Source: Magallana gigas
Lineage: Eukaryota
Assembly (NCBI RefSeq): GCF_963853765.1
Contig: NC_088858.1
Location: 22,258,001 to 22,322,000 of the forward strand
Length of the DNA stretch: 64,000 nt
Direction: 5' to 3'
The translations under genes were made by a program, and so were the position numbers. The notes under the pieces were generated by a model. The model searched no databases, had not been told where the DNA came from, and was given only the letters and a program-made list of their open reading frames with translations. This document shows, piece by piece, positions 2,046-4,107 of the stretch (positions are counted from its first letter, which is position 1; the number at the start of each line of letters is the position of its first letter).

Positions 2046-4107
2046 CTAATCGGAGTCCTCCTCATCTCCATAATCATTTGAATAACTGTTCCTTGGCGCA
2101 ACTGTAACAAAAAGGTTCACATTTTATTTAAATACCAAAAGTAAGGAAGGTCTGAAAAAGCAATTATCTACAACATCAATTTGCCAGGGCTTTTTTAGTA
2201 CATTAATACCAGTACAAGATGGCAAATAAACTTTTCATTTTCTAAATGGTATATGGATTTTCATCAAACATTTATGATGCGGACAGTTAAACTGAACTGC
2301 ATGCAAAATGAATTTTTCAGTCAAACATTAGCCAATGGGATGAACTGTGTTACCTGCTTGTTTGATCAGGGCTGCACACTCTGGATCCTTCGTTAGCTCC
2401 AGTGGCAACCTGCCTTCATTATTCTTAATATCCACTCGAGCACCTTGAAACAAAAAACATAAACACTTAAAATATGGTGGGGAAGGCATAAGGAGGCGTA
2501 ATAGTTCCTGTCACAAGCACCAGTGCCCATACAGTACATCTATATTTGATTTAAAAAGATGGATTAAATACAAGCAATAGCAGTTAGCTGGTGGGACAAA
2601 AAAATTGGTAAGAGTATCAACTGAAAATATTTTTTAAAGAAGTAAAAGTTTAACATAAAAACTGACACATTGGGAATAAATACCTTTCTGAATTAACAGT
2701 TTGACTGCCTCTGCATGGTTCTTCCAGGCTGCTGAATGTAATGGGGTGTCTCCTAATTTATTCTGTCAACAAAAGCAAAAACAGTCAATTGATTGGAACT
2801 CCTATGAGAGTAATCTTGTTCTATAAGAAATATTCACAATGTTTACATCCTAGATGTAGAAAATACATTTACTAACATTTGAACAAGAGGTGTACTTAAC
2901 ATTTTAAATCTGATACTCCATGTTTCTATATTACTGTTCCTGGCATGGTCATTAAATGAAGTGGAAAAGACAGATGTGTTCAGTTATAGAGGAGAGTGAA
3001 CATCTGGCTGTATTACATAGCGCATTATCTAATACTTCATATAACTTAATAGATACTATGATGACACTTAAATTGTACCAGAAATCCTTCATTAAATAAA
3101 AACACCAATTAATTTTTACAAATTACATGCACATGCATAATGTGCTGCATGGATTTGAGATCAGGACACATACCTGAATGTTGACCTGACAGTTTGAGCA
3201 TACCTGAACGTTGACCTGACAGTTTGTACATACCTGAACGTTGAACTGACAGTTTGAACATACCTGAATGTTGACCTGACAGTTTGAACATACCTGAACA
3301 TTGACCTGACAGTGTGAACATACCTGAACGTTGACCTGACAGTTTGAACATACCTGAACATTGACCTGACAGTGTGAACATACCTGAACGTTGAACTGAC
3401 AGTTTGAGCATACCTGAATGTTGACCTGACAGTTTGAACACACCTGAACATTGACCTGACAGTGTGAACATACCTGAACGTTGACCTGACAGTTTGAACA
3501 TACCTGAACATTGACCTGACAGTGTGAACATACCTGAACGTTGAACTGACAGTTTGAGCATACCTGAATGTTGACCTGACAGTTTGAACACACCTGAACA
3601 TTGACCTGACAGTGTGAACATACCTGAACATTGAACTGACAGTTTGAGCATATCTGAATGTTGACCTGACAGTTTGAACATACCTGAACGTTGACCTGAC
3701 AGTTTGAACATACCTGAATGTTGACCTGACAGTTTGAACATACCTGAACGTTGACCTGACAGTGTGAACATACCTGAACGTTGACCTGACAGTTTGAACA
3801 TACCTGAACGTTGACCTGACAGTTTGAACATACCTGAACGTTGACCTGACAGTTTGAGCCGAGTAATAACTGGATACAGTCTAAGTGTCCCCCATGTGCT
3901 GCCCAGTGTAGAGGAGTGGATCCAGCTTTATCTAAGCCATTGACAGACACCTGCATTCAATGGGGGAAAAACCCAATTTAATGGAGACAATGTCTCAATT
4001 TCTCTGATTTTTTTCTTGAATATTGGTTATTGAACTATCATAACCAAAACTCCGATCTCTTCTGGCTACCAGATCTTTGGCTTGTTTGATAGTAACAACC
4101 TTTAAAA

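Follow-up and report, generated by a model that had tools for sequence, protein, structure and literature searches.

The fifth exon of the oyster gene OSTF1 ends in an array of 30-bp repeats that reiterates its own 5′ splice site into the following intron. This array is probably a silent intronic minisatellite, young, lineage-specific and variable in copy number, whose transcripts are spliced from the first donor. Minisatellites with the first monomer lying across an exon-intron boundary have been described in the human genes F7 (IVS7), IFI6, CBS, LMNB2 and PDGFA (Borensztajn et al. 2006, PMC1557585). No description of a junction-reiterating minisatellite in a mollusc was found in the literature, and a search for OSTF1 in oysters returned no paper on the array, its matches dealing with the fish "osmotic stress transcription factor", which is a different gene.

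The window, that is, the whole stretch of 64,000 nucleotides of Magallana gigas (C. gigas below) that was analysed, carries on its minus strand, at 368-6406, the gene for osteoclast-stimulating factor 1 (OSTF1; 215 aa; SH3 and ankyrin repeats), with a coding sequence running from 6316 to 2049. Eight coding pieces of the 215-aa protein (P0047, XP_011448861.1) were placed on the minus strand by tblastn, and blastn of three RNA contigs (L003, L004 and L008) recovered eight exons between about 6406 and about 370. The protein is named osteoclast-stimulating factor 1 in the source databases, matches PDB 3ehq ("Osteoclast-stimulating factor 1") in one stretch over residues 9-215 (E 5e-73), and presents the make-up of the family, with about 215 aa, a proline-rich N-terminus, one SH3 domain and ankyrin repeats; Pfam located SH3_1 at residues 24-69 and Ank, Ank_2 and Ank_4 at residues 79-184. 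It is identical to XP_052701055.1 of C. angulata. A search of the gene against Rfam gave no match. The C. gigas OSTF1 cluster also includes N-terminally shorter products (P0049, P0050, P0053, P0057 and P0059; 115-186 aa), which start at internal or intron-derived methionines, that of P0050 being the ATGCAG at the end of intron 4, and all of which have the canonical exon 5-6 junction.

Exon 5 (3834-3950, minus strand; 117 nt, residues 103-141) is 100% identical to the RNA contigs and ends at the authentic 5′ splice site CAG|GTATGT (3828-3836, minus strand), of which 3834 is the last exon base and which is the only donor seen in transcripts. Intron 5 (2763-3833, minus strand) measures 1071 nt, 666 of which belong to the array, while the remaining 405 nt form a unique tail, and exon 6 (2684-2762, minus strand) follows the acceptor ttttgcttttgttgacag|AAT at 2762 and starts with NKLGDTPLH. 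At the protein level, the junction 141|142 falls at the end of an ankyrin repeat: within the Pfam Ank match to residues 112-143 it stands at 31|32 of the 33 profile positions, which agrees with the earlier proposal that extra units would enter the ankyrin stack in an inter-repeat hairpin. The Q|N junction lies inside VNVQNKLGDT, and an alignment of 11 orthologues, drawn from molluscs, a brachiopod and other sources, showed no insertion at it in any of them. The longer proteins of scallops (238 and 244 aa) were considered as candidates for an insert at the exon 5-6 junction and rejected, their extra residues being N-terminal.

Read along the minus strand, exon 5 passes into intron 5 as TCAAACTGTCAGGTCAACGTTCAG|GTATGT, and these 30 bases are then repeated in tandem, head to tail. 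Tandem Repeats Finder reported one array at 3168-3857, with a period of 30, 23.0 copies, 91% matches, no indels and a score of 1170, and the unit was matched 21 times at ≤3 mismatches against 0 in 100 shuffles. Unit 0 consists of the last 24 nt of exon 5 and the first 6 nt of the intron, and a CAG| junction is met at intervals of 30 nt, first at 3834 and last at 3174 (n = 23), followed by GTATGT in 17 cases, GTATGC in three, GTGTGT in two (3594 and 3444) and ATATGC in one (3654). The array displays both structural features of junction-reiterating minisatellites: its first monomer lies across the exon-intron boundary (array 3857-3168, exon 5 end 3834), and the authentic donor is repeated as pseudo-sites in the intronic part (3168-3833, minus strand), where 22 further junctions are found from 3804 to 3174, 21 of them with GT and one (3654) with AT. 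GTATGT, the hexamer of the authentic donor, was kept at 16 of the 21 GT-bearing intronic junctions, and units 1, 2, 5, 12 and 17 are identical to unit 0 across all 30 nt. The array at 3168-3857, its 23 junctions and the hexamer counts had been given by an earlier sequence-only reading, every number of which was found right by Tandem Repeats Finder and a unit-by-unit reading; its description of the unit as the final 24 nt of exon 5 followed by GTATGT, of the exon 6 acceptor at 2762, and of the gene and exon as OSTF1 and its fifth was likewise borne out.

The units are arranged in a higher-order pattern. An exact 150-bp duplication (3318-3617, minus strand) makes units 8-12 the same as units 13-17, and in the string of unit types, AAABCADEFGHIAFGHIAICHJC, 7 of 18 comparisons matched at lag 5 against ≤2 at other lags. 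The 150-bp block is a footprint of unequal exchange, by which the array would have grown in blocks of five units.

Other repeats were observed in the window. Intron 4 of OSTF1 holds a perfect (GA)37 microsatellite (4110-4183), and about 21.5 imperfect GA copies stand at the matching place in C. angulata, giving a length difference between the two taxa. Outside the gene, there are a 166-bp satellite in 9.2 tandem copies (20414-21948; 92% matches, score 2317), a composite region of 60/83-bp repeats bounded by (CT)n (11991-12358), another of 36/50/99-bp tandem arrays (58830-59343), and a full-length tRNA match in Rfam (29545-29616, minus strand; 35.4 bits against a gathering score of 29).

The units do not appear to be under constraint, and they drift as neutral DNA. 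The two commonest unit variants, C>T and G>A, are both transitions at the lone CpG of AACGTT and are carried by six units each, one donor of the array is dead (3654, AT), and the donor hexamer was kept no better than the rest of the unit, with three of its six positions varying against five of the other 24. The frame runs open from 3950 across 22 extra units and meets a stop 16 codons beyond the array, its translated decapeptide units (10 aa each) showing H, I, F and T variants. The earlier description of the unit as in frame and free of stops therefore stands for the full 22 extra units; as a sign of selection it does not, since all three sense frames of the array lack a stop, which makes the open frame a matter of unit composition without evidential weight. 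Only 6 of the 90 possible single changes in a unit create a stop. The palindromes AACGTT and CTGnCAG in the unit let the units pair with one another. Masking of the donors by folding of the array RNA was considered and set aside, the advantage of the region 3560-3860 (minus strand) over shuffles being modest (z = −2.57) and too small to support it.

All transcripts on hand were spliced from the first donor. Each of the eight RNA contigs fetched (L003-L010) contained one 24-nt block, with the exon context TTACTYGGC, not GTATGT, before it and AATAAATTAGG of exon 6 directly after it, and all eight joined donor 3834 to exon 6; GTATGTTCA was absent from all of them. The sequence collection has index entries for the exact 215-aa product in 663 blocks, and the 10 places fetched for it comprised eight Logan RNA contigs and two genome assemblies. 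Among the 16 members of the 90% cluster none exceeded 215 aa, the shorter ones being truncated N-terminally. A read-through protein query (candidates of 143-453 aa) returned only orthologues that matched exon 5 alone, and a pure-repeat query (candidates of 44-140 aa) returned no candidate. A word-free scan of 1.84 billion representatives gave only unrelated period-10 repeat proteins of 10-50% identity, none with more than one 5-residue word of the unit. The JGI metagenome contigs held no unit-to-exon-6 junction, a negative that carries no power because they held the 24-nt block in no form, spliced or genomic. Some synonymous variants were seen in or near the exonic copy of contigs L003, L006 and L007 (about 486-492 in L007), including AAC>AAT at the CpG of the exonic copy, which is the change seen in six intronic units, and CTC>CTT in the codon preceding GGC, upstream of the junction.

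Such results bear directly on the suggestion of the sequence-only reading that the array offers a menu of isoforms, in which most or all of the 21 extra donors would be used and copy number would set a choice of 0 to 22 extra decapeptides. That menu found no support in the eight contigs, all of which use 3834, in the cluster, which has no member above 215 aa, or in the protein searches, which found no extra-unit protein. In its favour stand 21 intact, near-identical and strong donors, all in frame and without a stop. The oyster donor CAG|GTATGT fits eight of the nine consensus positions. Predicted U1 pairing reached −8.3 kcal/mol with the common donor, was weaker with the two variants (−7.2 and −7.7) and weakest with the dead donor (−1.6), while the best value (−10.2) belonged to donor 3174, the last of the array and the nearest to the acceptor; classic duplicated-donor experiments sometimes favour the acceptor-nearest donor (discussed in PMC1557585). 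However, all transcript and protein evidence leads to the first donor, exon 5 would reach up to 777 nt, and the units lack any sign of constraint. Moreover, known minisatellites of this kind use at most their first three copies, F7, LMNB2 and PDGFA being spliced from the first donor only and IFI6 and CBS from the first three, which argues against use of the whole ladder (PMC1557585). We consider it very improbable.

A more modest use of the array has somewhat better prospects. The first donor would be dominant, and the second and perhaps the third (3804 and 3774) would be used constitutively at a low level, generating isoforms of 225 and 235 aa in which one or two decapeptides are inserted where the second ankyrin repeat ends. 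Units 0-2 show no difference at any of their 30 nt, donors 1 and 2 share the context from −24 to +30 with the authentic donor, the products, being in frame, would evade nonsense-mediated decay, and the human IFI6 and CBS minisatellites act in this way (PMC1557585; PMC4526556). A minor isoform of this sort would also be hidden by contig assembly. On the other hand, a 225- or 235-aa protein was absent from the cluster and from all protein searches, the C. gigas and C. angulata protein names bear no isoform label, and every aligned orthologue has the junction motif unchanged and without an insertion. On balance, low-level use of the second or third donor is judged unlikely.

The weight of the transcript evidence depends on what the contigs can display. 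Since products of later donors would be in frame and escape nonsense-mediated decay, their absence reflects rare production and not degradation. The Logan RNA assemblies were presumably built with k = 31, and tip and bubble removal would erase a minor isoform. Because such an isoform differs by only six 31-mers, the contigs reveal the dominant product and not an exclusive one. Read in this manner, the most upstream donor is the only one used in the dominant product of the eight RNA contigs, and no extra-unit isoform of the IFI6/CBS kind occurs among the predicted proteins or in the assembled transcripts, which represent dominant products. The first-donor reading also has points against it: the oyster donors CAG|GTATGT pair with U1 better than UGG|gugggu of F7, where competition began only with perfect-consensus pseudo-sites (PMC1557585), the second and third copies are used constitutively in IFI6 and CBS, and contig assembly shows the dominant isoform alone.

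A related proposal is that a small regulated share of transcripts comes from the second or third donor, adding one or two decapeptides where the second ankyrin repeat ends, or that copy number (9 against 23) alters the splicing efficiency of exon 5 and OSTF1 dosage in C. angulata relative to C. gigas. It is judged rather unlikely. If true, the locus would repeat the F7 experiment in nature and in frame, beyond masking by nonsense-mediated decay, with many more and much stronger competing donors than F7, in an invertebrate with short introns.

The comparison of oyster genomes indicated how the array, read as a silent and lineage-specific minisatellite, is distributed. At the orthologous site, C. 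angulata has nine units against the 23 of C. gigas, a comparison of one assembly per species. Both arrays end at the same flank, GTCCTGRTCTCAAATCC, the array end reading GTCCTGATCTCAAATCC in C. gigas and GTCCTGGTCTCAAATCC in C. angulata, and the unique 405-nt tail of intron 5 is 94% identical between the two. Variant positions 4, 13, 18, 19 and 30 of the unit are common to both species, and the consensus is the sole whole unit type that they share. A single junction without repeat was found in C. virginica, Ostrea edulis and Saccostrea echinata, in which the intron measures 152, 805 and 647 nt, respectively. In each of these three species the exonic 24 nt of the unit occur once, as conserved coding sequence. 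As this exonic part is ancestral and single-copy in the other oysters, the end of the exon served as the template and no foreign satellite was inserted. On this comparison, the array is a local duplication that would have arisen after the C. gigas/C. angulata lineage split from that of C. virginica. The single junctions in the three other oysters, together with the nine and 23 units, point to a young, lineage-specific array of variable copy number. The copy-number variation that had been anticipated for this VNTR was thus found between the two taxa at the same site, and the expectation that other OSTF1 orthologues lack the array held for the three oysters with a single junction.

The same comparison bears on whether the array, or its length, could be a mis-assembled repetitive stretch. 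Tandem repeats are prone to collapse and expansion in assemblies, and one C. gigas assembly was examined, the window being identical to record OY970750.1 of GCA_963853765.1 over 9316 overlapping bases. Against an artefact, an independent C. angulata assembly has an array at the same place and flank with different units and a different copy number, the window contains zero N, and the unit variants form an orderly higher-order pattern. An assembly artefact is therefore extremely improbable, and the array is real.

Taken as a silent minisatellite, the array would have started with a local tandem duplication of 30 bp straddling the boundary of exon 5 and intron 5 in the C. gigas/C. angulata lineage, and would have grown by replication slippage and later by unequal exchange of multi-unit blocks. 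The spliceosome would pick the authentic donor 3834, the most upstream of the copies, and the 21 intact downstream copies would leave with the intron as silent pseudo-sites, the mRNA encoding the ordinary 215-aa protein. As to why the first donor wins, we infer by analogy with human F7 IVS7 an oriented, 5′-to-3′, first-come commitment, probably combined with exon definition of the 117-nt exon, and not a repression of the later copies. A stepwise removal of the array by recursive ("ratchet") splicing, in which each CAG|GTATGT would serve as acceptor and regenerated donor, would also end in the canonical mRNA, the same product as that observed, and in form the junction resembles a recursive site, its AG standing immediately before GT. 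However, the unit, read by eye, has neither a polypyrimidine tract nor a branch-point-like motif upstream of CAG, and each 30-nt step would be shorter than a minimal intron, which makes this route highly improbable.

With the first donor as the site of choice, the array points to neither a new mechanism nor a new protein function. Its interest lies elsewhere. Minisatellites that reiterate a junction had until now been described from only a few mammalian genes; they arise in molluscs too, and the oyster spliceosome, confronted with 21 near-identical, strong and in-frame donors, still yields the canonical mRNA. Since every mistaken choice would give a stable in-frame mRNA, the locus would constitute a clean natural assay of how splicing outside the vertebrates settles on the first in a long row of identical 5′ splice sites. 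The array may also serve as a ready length marker between C. gigas and C. angulata.

Among the known systems, F7 IVS7 is instructive for the oyster locus. In both, the first monomer spans the exon-intron boundary, identical pseudo-sites come after the authentic donor, and the most upstream donor is used, which in the oyster refers to the dominant transcripts. The minisatellite of F7, which encodes coagulation factor VII, has a 37-bp unit in 5-9 copies, and its most upstream donor alone is used (PMC1557585); it is polymorphic in copy number, and the oyster array has 23 and nine units in C. gigas and C. angulata. The F7 unit, composed of 4 exonic and 33 intronic nt, is not a multiple of three and bears the weak donor UGG|gugggu, whereas that of the oyster has 30 bp (24 exonic and 6 intronic nt) in 9-23 copies, is in frame and bears a strong donor. 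A study of 50 F7 constructs demonstrated that the pseudo-sites were functional and yet did not compete with the first site, which fits an oriented 5′-to-3′ choice (PMC1557585). Scanning behaviour was thus established by 50 minigene constructs in F7, whereas in the oyster we only infer it.

The IFI6 minisatellite offers another comparison. Its intron 2 resembles the oyster array in that a short in-frame unit, of 12 nt in IFI6, reiterates the donor, about 25 times in IFI6. It is the precedent for the ladder idea, since downstream units serve as donors and three mRNA species result. The gene, also known as 6-16, has the authentic donor and 25 pseudo-sites, the two nearest of which are also used (Turri et al. 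1995, cited in PMC1557585), and the three mRNA species were confirmed (PMC4526556). IFI6 differs from the oyster in the constitutive use of the two copies that adjoin the authentic donor, no such product being on record for the oyster. In CBS, the 31-bp VNTR of IVS13 has two pseudo-sites that are used besides the authentic donor, whereas the LMNB2 (100-bp) and PDGFA (81-bp) repeats are spliced from the authentic donor only (PMC1557585). These three junction-reiterating repeats differ from that of the oyster in unit size, gene and taxon, all of them being mammalian. The oyster locus has the structural features of this known kind of minisatellite, and it shares its behavioural feature, splicing from the most upstream donor, at the level of the dominant transcript.
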